A stretch of 64,000 nucleotides of DNA, from sequence record MW845758.1; one strand, given 5' to 3'. The position numbers and the translations under genes are program-made. This document shows positions 5,308-41,388 of this stretch, in pieces (position 1 is the first letter of the stretch; every line of letters begins with the position of its first letter). Under the pieces are notes generated by a model. That model worked only from the letters and a program-made list of their open reading frames with translations, made no database searches and was not told the origin of the DNA.

Positions 5308-5333
5308 AAAGAGCCTCCGGGCTCTTTTTTTTT
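5308..5333 (+). terminator. Rho-independent terminator
   Basis: AGAGCC-TCCG-GGCTCT plus T run. Confidence 0.85.
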
Positions 5334-34114: not shown

Positions 34115-35812
34115 ATGCGCTATACGATTCACATTACCCACACAAGCATGGGGATACGTGTGGAGGTGCCTGTTCGTCAAATGGAAATGGCGATACTGGA
34201 TTGGGCATCAATGAATCTGCACGCCCCGAAGATGGGCAAAGACCACGGAAGGATAGTGACGGAGAAAGGGGATGGGTTCTATGTTCACATGCCAACCATC
34301 CACACCTTTATCTTTCACAAAACATTTTTAAGCCGTATCCAGTCCATCATCAATCACGTGGGCGTAGAGTATAAGGTTGACTACGAAGTCAGAGACCATT
34401 ACTACCCTCGAGCAGAACCGTACCGTTGTTCGTTTGACAACTACGGCTTTGAGATGGTAGTAACGGATGAGACGTCGCGCTTCTTTTATCAAAACGAGGT
34501 GGTGGACACGGCCAGCGGTGACGGTCGTGATCAAACTATCTTTGCCATTCAGACCGGTCGTGGTAAGACTAAGTCTTTCCAGAAGGTCATGGTGAAGAAA
34601 GGGGTGCGTACTGCGCTACTCCACCGTCCGTCCTACGTGGACAAATGGAAATTCGACTGCTGCGAAGACCCAACCGGTTTGCTGGAACCGCCGGAGGGGG
34701 TGCACATTTGTAAAGGCACGGAAAGTATTTACGAAGTGTACCAGATGGGCTTACAGGGTGAACTCGATGCGAAGGGGATTAAGATTATTATCTTCCCTAC
34801 CGTCTCGTTGTTTAACTTCCTGAAAGAGATAATCAACACCGCACACTCCAACGCCGTGTGTCTGGAGAAGTTCTTCGATGTGCTGGGCGTTGGCTTGCTT
34901 GGGTGTGATGAGGTGCACGAACATTTCTTACTGGTGTATTTGTCGGGTATCATGTTGAACCCGCCGTGTACCGTAGAGATGTCGGCAACCCTGACCCCGG
35001 GTGCGAACAAGCAGTTTATTGGTGAGCGTTATTTAGAGCGTTTCCCAATAGAGAACCGTTTGTCGATTCCATTCATTCCTGTGGTGGATGTGCGGGGCTT
35101 GTATTACAGCATTGACAACAAGAAGCTTGTTCAGTACGGGTCGAAGATGACGCCGTATAACCACAAGATGTTCGAGAAGGCTTTGTTCAAATACAATGCT
35201 CATGAATCGATGGCGGAGATGGTGTGGGATCTGATGACGAAAACTTACCTCAAGAACTACGAGGTAGGTCAGAAAGCATTGGTGTTCTTTGCAACCGTTG
35301 ACATGTGTGCTTTCTTTACGGAGTTCTTGCAACGTAAGCTTGCCGAGTCAGATTGGCATTACTTGCAACCGTTCAAGTATAATGCAGGCGATTCGTATGA
35401 TGATTTCATTGCAGCGGATATTGGTGTGTCCACACCGGGCAAGGCAGGAACCGCGATTGACATCCCGGGACTGATGCATGCTTTCGTGACCATCCCGATT
35501 GATGACCAGCAGCTCAACGAGCAGATTGCCGGTCGTCCCCGTTCTCAAACCCGTTGGGAAGCAGACCCACGGGTGTGGTTCTTGCACTGCAACGATATCC
35601 CCAAACACGGTACGTACTTGGGTTCCCGAAAGAATTCCCTCGGGCCAAAAGTCAAGTCGTTCCAAATCGCTTTCTCGCCTTATGTCATTCGGAGCAGTCA
35701 TGCTAACACCTCCTACTCCTACGCTTCCAACACCCCCGTATCTCGGATTGAACTTAGCAAGTTTTCTCCAAAACGTTCTAAGGGCGTATCCCGGCGCAGA
35801 AGACGTCGCTAA
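34115..35812 (+). CDS. SF2 DExH helicase (UvsW-like; phiKZ gp75-like)
   Basis: QTGRGKT, CDEVH, MSAT, GTAIDIP, QIAGRPR. Confidence 0.92.
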   Translation: MRYTIHITHTSMGIRVEVPVRQMEMAILDWASMNLHAPKMGKDHGRIVTEKGDGFYVHMPTIHTFIFHKTFLSRIQSIINHVGVEYKVDYEVRDHYYPRAEPYRCSFDNYGFEMVVTDETSRFFYQNEVVDTASGDGRDQTIFAIQTGRGKTKSFQKVMVKKGVRTALLHRPSYVDKWKFDCCEDPTGLLEPPEGVHICKGTESIYEVYQMGLQGELDAKGIKIIIFPTVSLFNFLKEIINTAHSNAVCLEKFFDVLGVGLLGCDEVHEHFLLVYLSGIMLNPPCTVEMSATLTPGANKQFIGERYLERFPIENRLSIPFIPVVDVRGLYYSIDNKKLVQYGSKMTPYNHKMFEKALFKYNAHESMAEMVWDLMTKTYLKNYEVGQKALVFFATVDMCAFFTEFLQRKLAESDWHYLQPFKYNAGDSYDDFIAADIGVSTPGKAGTAIDIPGLMHAFVTIPIDDQQLNEQIAGRPRSQTRWEADPRVWFLHCNDIPKHGTYLGSRKNSLGPKVKSFQIAFSPYVIRSSHANTSYSYASNTPVSRIELSKFSPKRSKGVSRRRRRR

Positions 35813-36080
35813 GGCACTGTGTACTGATGTCACGGTACACAGAGCTTTCCATTACTACATGGTAACGGAAAACAAAGCCGGCATGATGTTGTTGCAACGG
35901 GGTAAAACGTATTACATCACGCGTCAGTCCTCCATCCGGGGGACGGCGTCTTACGAGCTGTACGGATACGTGCTGTATCGTGAAGACCCATCAGGTAATG
36001 TGGACGATAACCCGAAAATGGCCTACAAGCTGTACGACAGCGAGTGGAATGATTGGGTTACCGTTCCGCACGACGGTTAA
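35700..36080 (+). CDS. Hypothetical protein (126 aa) overlapping the helicase 3' end
   Basis: ATG35700 with GGAG 5 nt upstream; in frame with track ORF 35499-36080. Confidence 0.6.
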   Translation: MLTPPTPTLPTPPYLGLNLASFLQNVLRAYPGAEDVAKALCTDVTVHRAFHYYMVTENKAGMMLLQRGKTYYITRQSSIRGTASYELYGYVLYREDPSGNVDDNPKMAYKLYDSEWNDWVTVPHDG

Positions 36081-36137
36081 TAAAAACATCATGGGTATAT
36101 GGTGTGTAAACCACCCAACCCCAGTAAGGACTGAATA

Positions 36138-36764
36138 ATGTCACAGCGCAAAAAGAAACCCGCTTATAACCCACGTAAACTGGCACGTGAGCGTCTGCAA
36201 AAACTGATGGGCAGTATCATCTACGTGCAGGACATGTTCACCATCGAGTCGGGTAAAATCGCGGGTAAGATTGATAACGATCTGAAAGCCATCGAAGGTA
36301 CCACCGAACTCGACGGTTATAAGCGTGAGCAGCTGGAACGCACCAAGCGTGCTTTCTTAGGCCTTATCGCACAGGTCAGTACCGGTCTGACTAAAATCAT
36401 CCAAGAAGCGGATGCGACTACCGGTAATCTGTACGACGACTTGAAAATCAAGCCGTGGAAAGAAAACAAAGAAGCCGCGTTTGCAGCTGAGCTGGCGCTG
36501 GAGCATTACTCCACCCTCGCTGCCATCGAAGGCCAGAACTACACGGGTACGATCATCGACATCATGGAAGACCACTTCCGTAACGTTGAATTCGTTAGCC
36601 GTGAAATCAAAGCCGGTGCTTCTCTGGAACAGGCGAAACAGCGTCTGGCGGATAACATCGCGAAAGAAGCTGAACTGGCACAGAAAGAAGCAGCGTTAGC
36701 GACCCAAGAAGTTCCGGGTGGTGAAAGCGTTGTTGAAACAAAGGAAGAAAGCCATGTCCAATAA
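36138..36764 (+). CDS. Conserved hypothetical protein (208 aa, helical)
   Basis: SD AAGGA; TATATG upstream. Confidence 0.85.
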   Translation: MSQRKKKPAYNPRKLARERLQKLMGSIIYVQDMFTIESGKIAGKIDNDLKAIEGTTELDGYKREQLERTKRAFLGLIAQVSTGLTKIIQEADATTGNLYDDLKIKPWKENKEAAFAAELALEHYSTLAAIEGQNYTGTIIDIMEDHFRNVEFVSREIKAGASLEQAKQRLADNIAKEAELAQKEAALATQEVPGGESVVETKEESHVQ

Positions 36765-38766
36765 CGAAGGTCGTCCGGGCATCGGTCGCGTCACCCCTGT
36801 GCCTACGCCGGGCGATGCTGCTGAGCTGATGGCGATTATGGATCAGAATCCGGAGCTCGGTATCAACCAAGCCCGTGAGCTGTTACAGCGTCGCCGTGAT
36901 GAAGCCCATCAGGAAGAGATTGAGAACACCCAGTCTCCTCAACCCCGCGGTATGACATTCCCGCAGGATAAAGCGATTGAGGACTCTCACGCTGGGAGTC
37001 TTCAGCCACAGGCGGAAGAACCCGCTCCTGTCTACCCTCGTGGTCAGACACCGGGCTTCTTGCACGTTGACGAACCGCCAACTATCCCTGCGCCTCCAGC
37101 GCAGGAGCCTGCACCCGCTACCCCTTCTTTTTTGCCATTAGAAGAGCCAGAGGCGCAGGAACACCGTCACGTTGACCCGACTCCAGCTGAGAAAACAACA
37201 GGTCCTGTTGAAGCACCGACTGAGCCGGCGTATGACGAAGACAAACGTGAGAACAAGGTTCCGGATTTGGCCAAGGCTAAACTGAAACCGATTCGTCACG
37301 GGTCGTCTGTACAGTCGAGCGAGTTTAGTGAACTCAATGGTGATGAGCAGGATATCCTGTTACTCGGCATGGGTGACTTACTCGGCCCGATGCAGACCGT
37401 CAATGAAATGCAGGCCGCGGTTAGCCGTTTCTTCGCCAGTCTGGAGCGTGACCCACGTAATGGTGAGCCACTGTTCCGCAGTGAGAAGGAAGAGCAAACC
37501 TTTAAACGTCTGCAAGCCACGCTGACTAACACCCCACCGATTACCCCGGGCACAGGTGCAGCAGCGTTTGACATGGCGCTACAGCGTGAAGACACGGTGT
37601 GGAACCAAGGCATGCAGAAAGACGGTGACAAATACGGCGGACTGATTGCGGTGAACTCTGGCGGTAAAGGTGCACTGGCTGCTCTGCGTCGTAAACGTAA
37701 AACCGGTTCTCCGGCAAGCGTGTTCTTACCGGCTTCGGGTTTCTACGTGAAGTTCCGCAGTCCACACGAACGCGACTTCTGTGACTTCGATATCGCGCTG
37801 GCGCTGCAGACTGCAAAAATCGGTACCAACTCGTACGGGTTGCTGATGTCGGCCTCGTCAGGTATCTACGTGCGTAACATCGTTGAGTTCTGTTTGCTGT
37901 TTGCAGAATCGACCACGCTGGATATCGGGGCAGATGACCTGAAGACCACGCTTATCGATCGCATCGACAAAGATGATTACTGGTTGATTATCGTGGGCAT
38001 GCTGGCGGCTAAATTCCCGGCGGGTATTCCGTGGGGCTTAAGCTGCCTGAACCCAGAGTGCGACCACGTCGCTGAAGGTCGTCTGAATCTGGCTCGTGCT
38101 ATTCGCATGGGTTCGAATCTGATTACCGATCGCCAACGTGCGTTGTACTACCGTCAGAAGTCTGACGACGACAACACTATCTCTTACGAAGAACAAGAAG
38201 AGTACCGTAAAGGCCACCTGCCGGTGTCTGCTTCTGTGTTCGAAGAGAACGGTGTGCGTGTGGAGTTCGGTCGCGCTACCTTAGGCGAGTTCTTTGATGT
38301 CACTGAAGAGTGGGCAGATGAGATTAACGAAACCACAACGCGTGCCCTGACGGATTACGCAACAGAGAAAGACCGTGAAGGTCACCTGCGGGTGAACGCC
38401 GAGTCTCGTCGTCTGACGCGTTATCTGCACATGGTGAAGTCTATCACGATTGACGAAGGTGAAGGTAAAGTGTCACTGTCGACTTCTCGTGAAGAGATTA
38501 AAATCATGTTGGGTGAGTTGTCACCAGACCGCATGTACGTAGCAGCGTTTGAAGCGGCTGTGACCAAATACACTGAGCTGTCTCGTCTGGCGGTGTTTGG
38601 CTACATGGGTCGTCGTTGTCCTGAGTGTCAGCAGGAGCAAGGCGAGAAAGAAGGTGATTTCCGTGGGATTGTTACCATCTCCCCGGACAGACTTTTTTTC
38701 GGTCTATCTCGTGCGGTGTCCGCAATGCAGAGACTCTGGCTCAGTCAATCCGCAAATATTGGCTAG
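36754..38766 (+). CDS. T4 gp26-like tail/baseplate assembly chaperone (G-like, 670 aa)
   Basis: ATG36754. P/E-rich N-terminus; core FLPASGFYVKFR..DDYWLIIVGMLAAKFP..CLNPEC and CPEC. Confidence 0.6.
   Translation: MSNNEGRPGIGRVTPVPTPGDAAELMAIMDQNPELGINQARELLQRRRDEAHQEEIENTQSPQPRGMTFPQDKAIEDSHAGSLQPQAEEPAPVYPRGQTPGFLHVDEPPTIPAPPAQEPAPATPSFLPLEEPEAQEHRHVDPTPAEKTTGPVEAPTEPAYDEDKRENKVPDLAKAKLKPIRHGSSVQSSEFSELNGDEQDILLLGMGDLLGPMQTVNEMQAAVSRFFASLERDPRNGEPLFRSEKEEQTFKRLQATLTNTPPITPGTGAAAFDMALQREDTVWNQGMQKDGDKYGGLIAVNSGGKGALAALRRKRKTGSPASVFLPASGFYVKFRSPHERDFCDFDIALALQTAKIGTNSYGLLMSASSGIYVRNIVEFCLLFAESTTLDIGADDLKTTLIDRIDKDDYWLIIVGMLAAKFPAGIPWGLSCLNPECDHVAEGRLNLARAIRMGSNLITDRQRALYYRQKSDDDNTISYEEQEEYRKGHLPVSASVFEENGVRVEFGRATLGEFFDVTEEWADEINETTTRALTDYATEKDREGHLRVNAESRRLTRYLHMVKSITIDEGEGKVSLSTSREEIKIMLGELSPDRMYVAAFEAAVTKYTELSRLAVFGYMGRRCPECQQEQGEKEGDFRGIVTISPDRLFFGLSRAVSAMQRLWLSQSANIG
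38694..38724 (+). other. Predicted programmed -1 frameshift signal
   Basis: In-frame X-XXY-YYZ heptamer T-TTT-TTC (38694-38700); hairpin TGCGG-TGT-CCGCA (38712-24); -1 frame open from 38658 to 39179. Confidence 0.75.
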
Positions 38767-39179
38767 ACTTCGAGCACGTTTCAACCGAAACGATAATCAC
38801 CACGCTCAAACTCGACGCCACGTCGCTGTTTAAACAACGCGGTGGGAGACCGATAACGTATCAGGAAGCACACGACACGTTATTGGAAGCGTTTGATGAT
38901 GCCATGGAACACGATACTGGTGAAAACAATGTGTTCCACAGTGACTTCGACGACCCGCTAACCGCCTCCCTGTTAGACATCTGGATGGAAACCTACATCC
39001 GAGAAAGAATCGGGGAGAGGTTTCGCTTATCGTTTGATGAGTTCTTAGACCGCCCACGATACGAAATTACTCGCCTCTTAAAAGTGGCCGGGCGTTTCAA
39101 TCAGGCAGTCAACCGAGCGCTTACTACGGAAGAGAACAAAATCTCCGGACTGGAACAGCAGTTGCACGGGAAGACGTGA
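38697..39179 (+). CDS. Frameshift (T-like) extension of the chaperone; GT fusion about 808 aa
   Basis: -1 frame reads FRSISCGVRNAE..LDIWMETYIRERIGERFRLSFDEFLDRPRYEITRLL..; contains track ORF 38883-39179. Confidence 0.7.
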   Translation, partial: FRSISCGVRNAETLAQSIRKYWLDFEHVSTETIITTLKLDATSLFKQRGGRPITYQEAHDTLLEAFDDAMEHDTGENNVFHSDFDDPLTASLLDIWMETYIRERIGERFRLSFDEFLDRPRYEITRLLKVAGRFNQAVNRALTTEENKISGLEQQLHGKT

Positions 39180-39183
39180 CTCT

Positions 39184-39213
39184 AGGGGAGCTTCGGCTCC
39201 CCTTCTTTTTTTA
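39184..39213 (+). terminator. Rho-independent terminator
   Basis: AGGGGAGC-TTCG-GCTCCCCT plus T run directly after the -1-frame stop. Confidence 0.9.
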
Positions 39214-39251
39214 TTAGGGGGTTGTTATGAACCCTACTAAGGACACACACC

Positions 39252-40097
39252 ATGAACATCTACGATGATGTGGCTGACCAGTTAATCATGTACCGTCACG
39301 AGACGCGTGCAGCCCCTCTGCTCGACCTCGTAACTATCCTGCTGGATAACGGCTATGAACCGGCCCTGACCGAAATTTACCATCAGCCTCTGCCCGACCC
39401 GAATGACGAAACCATCCGCTACGAAGAAATCATCGTACGTTGTACCGTGGCGTTTGCATCAAAGTGTGGGGTTGCCTATAACCCACAACAGGTCTTCCGT
39501 AAACCCAAAGAAGCCGGATTAATTCTCCACGGCCTGCTGGAAGGGTTTGAAGACAACGAAGACACCGACACCCTGTACGGTATCGTACTGTCGGGTGAAC
39601 CGCCTATCTTCGTGCTGGAGAACCTGATTCGTTATGTATTCGGGGATGACAACCTGCACGTTGAAGATTTGATTATCAACGTTGAGAAACGCGTGATGAC
39701 GGTACTGCAAAACTTCCTCGCGGCAATCACCCTTGAGAAAGCAAACCTGCAAACCGATACCCGTGTGCCACTGCTGGCTGCATACCTGCGTTACTTCCCA
39801 CAGAACCCGGTTGCTTGGGCATTCTTAAACTTGCCCGCACAGGTTGATGAGAAAACCCTGATTCAGCAATTTGATTTTGATGAAGACAATGGGGTGAATC
39901 AAACCGAACTGTTGGTGATTTATGCAGTCGGGCTGTGTGTGGCGCAATACAGCGATTTTGACGGGGCTTACACGCATTTAGAGAAGGCGTTAGAAGCATT
40001 GAATGCAGATGGCTTATCTGTCTCTCCTATCCTTCAGGAGGGCTTACAGGCCCTTAAAACGATATACGGAGAGAAGGTAGAAGATGAACAAGCTTGA
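39252..40097 (+). CDS. Conserved hypothetical protein (281 aa)
   Basis: SD AAGGA; precedes the virion RNAP subunit. Confidence 0.85.
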   Translation: MNIYDDVADQLIMYRHETRAAPLLDLVTILLDNGYEPALTEIYHQPLPDPNDETIRYEEIIVRCTVAFASKCGVAYNPQQVFRKPKEAGLILHGLLEGFEDNEDTDTLYGIVLSGEPPIFVLENLIRYVFGDDNLHVEDLIINVEKRVMTVLQNFLAAITLEKANLQTDTRVPLLAAYLRYFPQNPVAWAFLNLPAQVDEKTLIQQFDFDEDNGVNQTELLVIYAVGLCVAQYSDFDGAYTHLEKALEALNADGLSVSPILQEGLQALKTIYGEKVEDEQA

Positions 40098-41388
40098 TTA
40101 TCTGATTGCTGCTTGTAAACGTGGGGCGTGGCGGAGACTGGTGTGGCGTTTAAGCGTCTTTAACGTCTGTACCTTTCCTGCGAACGAACGTCCGGAAGAT
40201 TACGACCTGACGTATATCGACGGGTACCCGCACTACTGGCAGGATGAAGCCCCGAGCCAAGAGCCGGGCTGGATTAAGATTGAAGGGGCAGACAAAGACA
40301 AAGAGCTGTTCTACGCAGAAGACCGCTTTACGATGATTCCGGATCACTACCCGGGCTTTGAAGGTAAAGTGGAAACCGGTGTGGGGCGCTACGTCTTTAA
40401 CTGGATTGTTATCTACTACGCGTTCGGTACGAGAATGCCGTATCTGGTTGACCAACCCAGTCCGCTTGCCTACCAGAACGAGATTTACAAACGCTGTCTG
40501 GATAACGAAGACGACGACCCTAACAACGAAGCAGCGATTCGTCCGAGTATGGTGGGTAAGTTCATTCAGGGCTTAAGTGAAATTGCCCCGATGACAATCG
40601 CCATTGCACCAACCGGTACGTTGCGTTCGCTCTCGGTTCACCCCGACACGTACAAGATGCGTGATGCGTTACTCTTAAAGCACAAGGACGAGTTGGATAA
40701 CCCAGCCGTTATCGTGCAGATTGAGAAAGCGCTGGATGCACTCGATACCGAATGGTTGTCCGGTGACCAGTCTATCCAGTTCTACGCTTCGAAGAAATCG
40801 AGGATGCGTCGTCGTAAACTGTTCCTGATGTACGGGATTGAAACCGCCTTTAAAGAAGGTGCTGATTTCACACTCATCCCGACGTCGTTAATGGAAGAGA
40901 ACAAATCCGGTCTCTCCTACCTCGTGGACAAATACAACTCCACTCGTGAAGGTTCCTTCATGCGTGGTGCGGAAACCGCGAAAGGGGGTGAGCAGGTTCG
41001 TATCATCCAGATGATTTTCCAGAACCACCGTATCGTCGAAGGGGATTGTGGTACCAAACTCACCCAAGTGGTGAAAATCACCCCGACTAACCAGTTCATG
41101 TACGTTGGGATGAACTCGGTAGATAACGGTAAACTTGTGCAGCTGTCTAAGGATATGCTGAAAGGGTTGCTCGGTAAAACCATCCGTATCCGCCGGCCTT
41201 TATTATGCCAGCGGGGACACGTCGACTGTTGTGCGGCTTGTGCATCTGCAGATAAAGCCAAAGAGGAACGTGCGATTGCCGCCGATATCGCCACCGGGAT
41301 GTCCAACATCATGTTGAACGCCATGGGTGCCATGCACGGCCGTGAAACCATCGTTGAAGAATTTGACCCCCTACTCCACATTACGTAA
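40084..41388 (+). CDS. Virion RNAP beta'-like middle subunit (phiKZ gp80-like)
   Basis: GAETAKGGEQVRIIQ..IVEGDCGT bridge helix; RRPLLC..CCAAC Zn site. Confidence 0.88.
   Translation: MNKLDYLIAACKRGAWRRLVWRLSVFNVCTFPANERPEDYDLTYIDGYPHYWQDEAPSQEPGWIKIEGADKDKELFYAEDRFTMIPDHYPGFEGKVETGVGRYVFNWIVIYYAFGTRMPYLVDQPSPLAYQNEIYKRCLDNEDDDPNNEAAIRPSMVGKFIQGLSEIAPMTIAIAPTGTLRSLSVHPDTYKMRDALLLKHKDELDNPAVIVQIEKALDALDTEWLSGDQSIQFYASKKSRMRRRKLFLMYGIETAFKEGADFTLIPTSLMEENKSGLSYLVDKYNSTREGSFMRGAETAKGGEQVRIIQMIFQNHRIVEGDCGTKLTQVVKITPTNQFMYVGMNSVDNGKLVQLSKDMLKGLLGKTIRIRRPLLCQRGHVDCCAACASADKAKEERAIAADIATGMSNIMLNAMGAMHGRETIVEEFDPLLHIT

Follow-up and report, generated by a model that had tools for sequence, protein, structure and literature searches.

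The subject of this report is a 64,000-nucleotide (nt) stretch (64 kb, hereafter the window, in which position 1 is the first letter) of the genome of Erwinia phage pEa_SNUABM_11 (MW845758.1, 251 kb), which belongs to the genus Wellingtonvirus of the family Chimalliviridae, the nucleus-forming jumbo phages. Within it we analyzed the gene homologous to gp77 of phage phiKZ together with the short reading frame that overlaps its 3' end in the -1 frame. A previous examination of the letters alone (the sequence-only reading) had predicted that the two frames are joined by a programmed -1 frameshift and that their products form a tail-assembly chaperone pair of the G/GT type. The features of the locus are the following (ORF, open reading frame; the 0 frame is that of the long gene):

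36754-38766, plus strand: 0-frame ORF of 670 amino acids (GenBank QXO09476, "hypothetical protein"), homologue of phiKZ gp77 (PHIKZ077), PhiPA3 gp074 and 201phi2-1 gp136
38694-38700, plus strand: slippery heptamer T_TTT_TTC in the 0-frame codons CTT TTT TTC, the last two of which encode Phe648-Phe649
38701-38763, plus strand: dual-coding overlap of 21 codons, encoding the 0-frame C-terminal tail (a predicted helix) and also read in the -1 frame
38712-38724, plus strand: short hairpin TGCGG / TGT / CCGCA, 11 nt 3' of the heptamer, weak and found in the Wellingtonvirus clade only
38764-38766, plus strand: 0-frame stop codon TAG, 22 codons after the TTC codon, TAG in 23 of 23 distinct close relatives
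38700-39179, plus strand: -1-frame extension of 159 codons plus the stop codon TGA (39177-39179), predicted to be helical
39184-39212, plus strand: intrinsic-terminator-like hairpin (39184-39203) followed by a run of seven T, conserved in the phages Kwan and Wellington

The in-phase heptamer, as well as its distance of 22 codons from the TAG, was read directly in the sequence, where a C at 38700 ends the run of seven T (T7) at 38693-38699. Behind a TGA at 38655-38657, the -1 frame is open from 38658 and uninterrupted until the TGA at 39177-39179, so that the open frame described earlier was found again with a length of 159 instead of 160 codons after the slip site. Its first ATG (38904) is the GenBank start of the downstream gene (QXO09477, 38904-39179, hypothetical protein) and its first TTG (38883) gives the 98-amino-acid ORF of the program-made ORF list; neither is preceded by a Shine-Dalgarno motif at a usable distance. 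The lack of an early start and the calling of a merely truncated small ORF, both predicted by the sequence-only reading, were thus borne out. The terminator-like site was the only one on the plus strand within 35800-39400, and since it is the first such site after the gene, both frames are considered to lie on one transcript unit. The predicted products are a short form of 670 amino acids and a long form of 649 + 159, that is about 808, amino acids, in agreement with the sizes originally proposed.

For the comparison with related phages, tblastn searches matched the 670-amino-acid protein in 234 phage records and the -1-frame piece in 65. The named genomes compared were Kwan, Wellington, SPN3US, Asesino, Machina, ChrisDB, Caitlin, CR5, Phobos, pEa_SNUABM_4, and pEa_SNUABM_9, to which 17 IMG/VR loci were added, resulting in a usable close set of 29 loci with 23 distinct sequences that spans five genera (Wellington-, Seoul-, Erskine-, Machina-, and Derbicusvirus) plus the IMG/VR contigs. 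The protein identity of these relatives to the 670-amino-acid protein was only 32-78%. T_TTT_TTC was present exactly 70 nt before the TAG in 29 of 29 loci, always together with the open -1 frame, which was 151-162 codons long after the slip in the 23 distinct relatives. The invariance of the heptamer, of its spacing to the stop codon and of the open -1 frame gives the frameshift predicted by the sequence-only reading strong comparative support.

The change of frame was also visible in the substitution pattern of the close set. Column entropy at codon positions 1, 2, and 3 was 0.88, 0.77, and 1.34 upstream of the site, which is the periodicity of the 0 frame, and 1.01, 0.58, and 1.56 (first 39 nt) or 0.65, 0.34, and 1.34 (117 nt) right after the TAG, which is the periodicity of the -1 frame; the 63-nt overlap had a mean column entropy of 0.57 compared with about 1.0 in its flanks. 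No -1-frame stop codon occurred in any of the 23 sequences over the 120 nt that follow the TAG, compared with totals of 38 stops (0 frame) and 59 stops (+1 frame) in the other two frames. The -1-frame identity to the window amounted to 0.64 (residues 1-21), 0.56 (residues 22-38), and 0.67 (residues 39-75), and the tblastn alignments of the -1 piece began at its residue 1 in nearly all 65 records. The positions of -1-frame start codons were not conserved (14, 41, 47, 116 to 119, and 140 nt after the TAG), and several sequences, that of pEa_SNUABM_11 included, had none before 116/119 nt after the TAG. Given this -1-frame coding signature, the absence of stops and the unfixed starts, the stretch after the slip appears to be translated as part of the -1 frame, without having its own start. 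The 0-frame tail was conserved too (its identity to the window averaged 0.53, and the seven residues L651, S652, R653, V655, Q659, Q665, and G670 were invariant), and both products therefore seem to be under selection.

In the GenBank records examined the small ORF was truncated, its starts were inconsistent, and the frameshift was annotated in none of them. Downstream ORFs of near-identical or homologous genomes have been annotated with very different starts, giving proteins of 74 to 147 amino acids; Kwan (L002 4458) and Wellington (L003 4314), for instance, have nearly identical sequences and different annotated starts, and the same was seen in SPN3US, ChrisDB, CR5, and others. Gene callers choose whichever start-like codon is present.

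How far the site differs from chance was evaluated within the window, using as long ORFs the 40 ORFs of at least 200 amino acids (16,552 codons). Seven in-phase heptamers of the type X_XXY_YYZ occurred within 150 nt of the ends of long ORFs, and the -1 extension of 159 codons at T_TTT_TTC compares with 30 codons for the next best of the seven. Phenylalanine was encoded by TTC 503 times and by TTT 240 times, and the 41 Phe-Phe pairs consisted of 28 TTC-TTC, 12 TTC-TTT, no TTT-TTT, and a single TTT-TTC, which is the frameshift site. Since 40 of the 41 pairs begin with TTC, shift-prone Phe-Phe pairs are avoided by the phage throughout the window with the sole exception of 38694-38700, and this avoidance might reflect selection against accidental slippage that acts on the whole genome. 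The codon CTT that precedes the Phe-Phe pair is the second-rarest of the four CTN leucine codons (113 of 1042).

Runs of at least seven T occurred nine times in the window, and only the run at 38693-38699 was located inside an ORF; the other eight were tails of intergenic terminator hairpins. These eight plus-strand runs (at 5325, 11695, 18484, 20742, 29359, 34094, 39206, and 59754) each follow a G+C-rich intergenic hairpin of the GGGG...CCCC type, and look like a uniform set of intrinsic terminators punctuating the plus-strand gene blocks.

On the basis of these comparisons we consider it likely that a programmed -1 ribosomal frameshift at T_TTT_TTC in the gp77-homologue gene yields proteins of 670 and about 808 amino acids. 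Most ribosomes would read Phe648-Phe649 and 21 further codons and stop at the TAG at 38764, giving a 670-amino-acid protein that ends in the conserved helix. A minority would slip one base back, with the two phenylalanyl transfer RNAs re-pairing on T_TTT_TTC, and would then read CGG at 38700 and 158 more codons until the TGA at 39177. In the resulting long form the terminal helix would be swapped for a helical domain of about 159 residues, and the frameshift would set the ratio of a form with the core only to a form with the core plus this partner domain, which elsewhere in the family is encoded by an adjacent small gene, sometimes with its own ATG. We infer the ribosomal nature of the shift, its efficiency, and the role of the two forms from the comparative evidence. 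Searches of the literature on phiKZ, SPN3US, Chimalliviridae, jumbo-phage frameshifts, and gp77 found no report of this frameshift; mentions of a "gp77" there were rejected as homologues because the names follow the numbering of other phages.

The pairing of the two genes extends to distant relatives. The 670-amino-acid protein matched the profiles phrog_8054 (expect value, E, 4e-242) and phrog_4585 (E 3e-65), as does phiKZ gp77, and the extension has its homologue in the small ORF located behind the gp77-like gene of other Chimalliviridae (phiKZ gp76.4, PhiPA3 gp073, and 201phi2-1 gp135), with which it shares phrog_7580, phrog_12109, and phrog_13274. The ORF that comes next was in the -1 frame in each of the 13 named distant genomes, and this frame opened before the upstream stop. 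An in-phase T_TTT_TTT or T_TTT_TTC was found in 10 of the 13, including phiKZ, 201phi2-1, RP12, Ea35-70, and Xoo-sp14; among the remaining three, PhiPA3 and Psa21 have six T (T6) preceded by G or A, and pVa-21 has five (T5). Between the T-run and the annotated start lie 84 codons in phiKZ, 57 in Xoo-sp14, and 76 in AhC3_1; the phiKZ stretch is without any ATG, GTG, or TTG, and in Xoo-sp14 and AhC3_1 there are ATG or non-ATG candidates before the annotated start. The peptides encoded before the annotated starts of phiKZ, PhiPA3, 201phi2-1, Psa21, and Xoo-sp14 could be aligned and share motifs.

Using a four-sequence alignment, 20 further distinct phiKZ-like IMG/VR loci were collected, in all of which the -1 frame is already open before the T-run and remains so for 137-164 codons beyond the stop; a canonical run of seven or eight T (T7 or T8) is present in eight of them. 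The distance from the T-run to the stop varies between 31 and 118 nt in distant relatives, and the Phe-Phe pair is invariant or nearly so across the family. Because the distant genomes and IMG/VR loci keep the open -1 frame, the two-frame layout is regarded as family-wide. The conservation expected by the sequence-only reading across Chimalliviridae therefore held throughout for the open frame and only in part for the T7 or T8 run. Putative recoding is best supported in the pEa_SNUABM_11 clade, phiKZ, 201phi2-1, and the Agricanvirus-type phages.

Several observations weigh against a programmed ribosomal frameshift, or at least against its occurrence in all lineages. RNAalifold applied to the close relatives returned -0.72 kcal/mol, no compensatory pairs and no conserved stimulator, and the fold of 96 nt of the window sequence was no better than that of shuffled sequences (z = -0.8). 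The hairpin of the sequence-only reading (arms TGCGG at 38712-38716 and CCGCA at 38720-38724, five base pairs) is present 11 nt downstream of the heptamer but is restricted to the Wellingtonvirus clade, its pair 21-31 forming in only three of 19 distinct sequences. A five-base-pair stem TCTCG/CGAGA starting 6 nt after the heptamer was paired in 91.6% of cells without covariation; its pairing is possible in most relatives outside the Wellingtonvirus clade, and the stem positions are also constrained by dual coding. The conservation of the heptamer itself partly follows from the invariant Phe-Phe pair and dual coding. In 12 of the 20 phiKZ-like IMG/VR loci the run is only T6 preceded by a non-T base, and many T6 loci carry an ATG soon after the upstream stop; an ATG at or shortly after the upstream stop is likewise found in RP12, FBKp24, Psa21-like phages, and pVa-21. 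In these distant lineages the small domain may be made separately, in place of or beside frameshifting. A natural in-frame fusion was sought among 1.84 billion representative proteins, and a single artefact was found. In favor of the frameshift, H_HH.U_UU.Y sequences, including U_UU.U_UU.Y, are among the most efficient in Escherichia coli (Sharma et al., 2014, PMC4066793); U_UU.U_UU.C is found in insertion sequence (IS) elements, and the tetramers U_UU.C and U_UU.U rank next after A_AA.G (PMC4066793).

To the observations against a ribosomal shift belongs the fact that the site is a pure homopolymer, T7 in the window and T8 in some relatives, at which the phage or host RNA polymerase might add one U in some transcripts; one inserted base leads to the same frame as a -1 shift, and thereby to the same protein of about 808 amino acids. 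Such transcriptional slippage would be in line with the failure to find a strong downstream RNA stimulator and with the annotation of unusual multisubunit RNA polymerases in these phages, and UUUUUUU is under-represented in all three frames of E. coli genes, possibly because of transcriptional slippage (PMC4066793). In the close clade, however, the run is always in X_XXY_YYZ phase and never longer than seven, the other T7-T10 runs of the window are terminator tails, and many relatives have only T6 and one T5. Slippage of known RNA polymerases is very low at T5-T6 lengths. In view of the conserved phase and of the relatives with T6 or T5, we favor a ribosomal shift and consider transcriptional slippage unlikely. 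The ATG codons near the upstream stop (pVa-21, RP12, FBKp24, Psa21, and others) would fit the view that recoding does not take place at all, and that the small gene is expressed on its own by possibly non-canonical initiation or by re-initiation after the TAG, with the T-run and the overlap being by-products of Phe-Phe. The small ORF is indeed separate in GenBank and in PHROGs (phrog_7580, 119 positions), and apart from the one artefact the matches of the extension in the library of 1.84 billion proteins were stand-alone proteins of 70-165 amino acids. This explanation is difficult to reconcile with a -1 coding signature of 56-64% identity that begins at the first codon after the slip, tens of codons before any start, with start positions that vary between relatives and are without Shine-Dalgarno motifs, with the 84 start-less codons of phiKZ, or with TTT-TTC and a preceding NTT codon that run counter to the codon habits of the phage, and we regard it as improbable.

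A homopolymer is also where a miscall could split one long gene into two frames by sequencing error, or where a pseudogene could arise, and two fused sequences were encountered that could be interpreted in this way. The record of Enterobacteria phage SEGD1 (L008, SEGD1_042) annotates a single ORF of 795 amino acids; it was rejected as a natural fusion because the T7 run is kept and a short divergent stretch immediately before it, absent from other SPN3US-type genomes, accounts for the single frame, and it is probably an assembly or sequencing artefact. A fused 312-amino-acid fragment (P0059) was rejected as a read error; its source is a 1.6-kb Logan contig (SRR24775682_366466, L032) with several homopolymer length differences compared with all relatives. 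Against a miscall stand the identical T7C and two-frame layout in 29 loci from many laboratories, platforms, and metagenomes and the conservation of the 0-frame tail past the site. Dozens of independently made assemblies (NCBI, JGI, ENA, and Logan) contain the form of about 650-720 amino acids, and sequencing error is therefore not considered the cause of the frame change; judged by these comparative data this reading is effectively refuted, and we give it next to no probability.

Structure predictions and profile searches provided limited information on the protein that would be made in two forms. The AlphaFold2 (AF2) model of the 670-amino-acid protein, based on a 35-sequence alignment, had a predicted local distance difference test score (pLDDT) of 70.6 and a predicted template modeling score (pTM) of 0.64. 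It consists of N-terminal helices, a disordered linker (residues about 59-194), and a confidently predicted folded core (about 195-670) that includes a helix at 644-667; the 159-amino-acid extension was predicted to be helical with low confidence (pLDDT 45.7). Invariant residues were C431, C436, C622, C625, E339, C343, D344, D346, F648, and F649, and zinc binding is suggested by four invariant cysteines (C431, C436, C622, and C625) and an acidic cluster (E339, D344, and D346). No named function was obtained from Pfam, NCBIfam, PHROGs, and PDB sequence searches with both pieces, 35 relatives, and the phiKZ, Ea35-70, and pVa-21 homologues, and Foldseek comparison of the AF2 model with the PDB returned nothing below E 1.9. 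An archaeo-eukaryotic primase fold, considered in view of the acidic motif, the cysteine pairs, and the adjacent helicase, was dropped because no such PDB fold was matched. A list of non-structural proteins of phage Churi that are present at 15 min of infection includes the counterpart of phiKZ gp077 (PMC11849849), and this timing points to early, not late, expression. The 201phi2-1 proteins gp135 and gp136 are without the note "identified using mass spectrometry" that gp138 and gp139 carry; phiKZ gp77 and the extension are in no PDB entry, and the homologue is absent from the phiKZ and Goslar virion structures. The gp77-like protein is a probable zinc-binding, non-structural protein of the early or middle phase. 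The linker (36930-37335) is rich in proline, glutamate, and alanine and variable in length, and it is the probable reason why the distant homologue of Aeromonas phage LAh10 carries a label such as "ZipA-like cell division protein".

The functional part of the sequence-only reading was that the gene is the equivalent of lambda G/GT, i.e., a tail or baseplate assembly chaperone produced in a fixed ratio, and built on a hub-assembly protein similar to T4 gp26. Common to both is the principle that a -1 shift close to the 3' end gives a second product with a C-terminal extension, and a chaperone would, like the protein studied here, be absent from solved virion structures. In a Foldseek search of BFVD a 687-amino-acid "Baseplate protein" model (E 2.5e-20) followed the jumbo-phage homologues, and models labeled "Baseplate hub assembly protein, bacteriophage T4-like" were matched with E 6.5e-5, 2.2e-4, and 2.8e-2; the gp26-labeled matches had template modeling (TM) scores of 0.49-0.50 per target and 0.25 per query and 10-11% identity, and they are predicted structures with automatic labels. 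One homologue, MW384823.1 (pEa_SNUABM_43) 39563-41152, is named "putative baseplate hub assembly protein". This was the only GenBank record seen that names the homologue, and the name agrees with the weak BFVD matches without support from sequence models.

The evidence against this assignment concerns location, size, and homology, and since all three fail we do not consider the gene a homologue of lambda G/GT. There is no tube, sheath, or tape-measure gene nearby, and the absence of an adjacent tape-measure gene had already been recognized; the gene lies between a helicase gene and those for a virion RNA polymerase beta-type subunit and DNA polymerase, so that its neighbors are replication and transcription genes along with two hypothetical genes (gp78 and gp79 homologues), in a synteny conserved in more than 20 relatives. 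Tail-chaperone or T4 baseplate matches were not found in Pfam, PHROG, or NCBIfam for any of the 35 members, Pfam and PHROG comparisons extended to E 10 gave no gp26 match for the 670-amino-acid protein, for 34 relatives, or for the phiKZ, Ea35-70, and pVa-21 homologues, and BFVD matches labeled "tail assembly chaperone" were insignificant (E at least 2.4). The apparently early expression of the Churi homologue, listed as non-structural, also speaks against a tail role, as do the missing mass-spectrometry note of 201phi2-1 gp135 and gp136 and the absence of phiKZ gp77 from PDB entries, and the paper on the Goslar virion does not mention a frameshift or chaperone. The lambda G and GT proteins have roughly 140 and 280 amino acids, so that the products of 670 and 808 amino acids are about five times the size of G. 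A G/GT-type role is accordingly rated as very unlikely, with a weak fold-level and no sequence-level match remaining of the gp26 idea. A bolder variant, in which the protein may be a very distant gp26-type assembly factor, would make it the long-sought chaperone frameshift of giant contractile tails.

Among known systems, the site resembles E. coli dnaX (tau/gamma) and the shifts of IS3/IS1-family elements in having an in-phase X_XXY_YYZ heptamer in a bacterial-type gene and two products with a shared N-terminal part in a presumably fixed ratio. It differs from dnaX in that no internal Shine-Dalgarno sequence, strong hairpin, or pseudoknot could be shown, in belonging to an unrelated gene family, and in that the shifted product, which in dnaX is the shorter one, is longer by about 138 residues. 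With lambda G/GT it shares, in addition to the position of the slip and the C-terminal extension, a layout conserved despite sequence divergence. The core fold resembles the BFVD models labeled as T4 gp26-type, whereas the protein is more than twice the size of that family and differs from it in genomic context and in having no PDB counterpart. The true homologues are the pairs phiKZ gp77 and gp76.4, PhiPA3 gp074 and gp073, and 201phi2-1 gp136 and gp135, which have the same order, the same -1 offset and a T-run encoding Phe-Phe; the differences are the variable distance from the T-run to the stop, the length of the run (T6, T7, or T8), and the ATG of several lineages. The proposed mechanism is of the known heptamer type (dnaX, IS3, and G/GT), and the gene would work like a fixed-ratio two-product gene, not like a tail-assembly chaperone.

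The surrounding gene order was also compared. Upstream, a gene for a 208-amino-acid protein (36138-36764; phiKZ gp78-like, without known domain) overlaps the start of the ORF at 36754 by 11 nt, and the order of the gp78-like gene, the gp77-like gene, and the small -1 ORF is kept throughout Chimalliviridae. Past the terminator, the genes at 39252-40097 and 40084-41388, which overlap by 14 nt, are the counterparts of phiKZ gp79 and gp80, the latter being the virion RNA polymerase beta-type subunit. The gp79/gp80 pair is co-directional with the gp78/gp77 pair in pEa_SNUABM_11 and divergent from it in phiKZ-type genomes.

Chimalliviridae are intensively studied as nucleus-forming and therapeutic phages, and most of their conserved genes are without known function. 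A conserved recoding site would imply the production of two proteins from this gene at a defined ratio, and it would join two "hypothetical" gene families as one functional unit. Because the two forms would differ in one C-terminal domain, they offer a concrete handle on the role of the protein. The annotation would be corrected for more than 60 genome records that list truncated small ORFs with inconsistent starts. Since the databases lack the long form and the start-less -1 part, existing proteomics data may already hold the proof. Outside tail-chaperone genes few phage frameshifts are well supported, and the site would be a further one. As a tentative and rather doubtful extension, frameshifting could be an ancestral trait of Chimalliviridae by which the ribosome sets the ratio between two forms of an early, non-structural, zinc-binding core protein, with the partner domain of the long form later released as a separate gene in some lineages. 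If this is true, the family would share a recoding event in a gene associated with replication and transcription, not with tail assembly, that every current annotation has missed.

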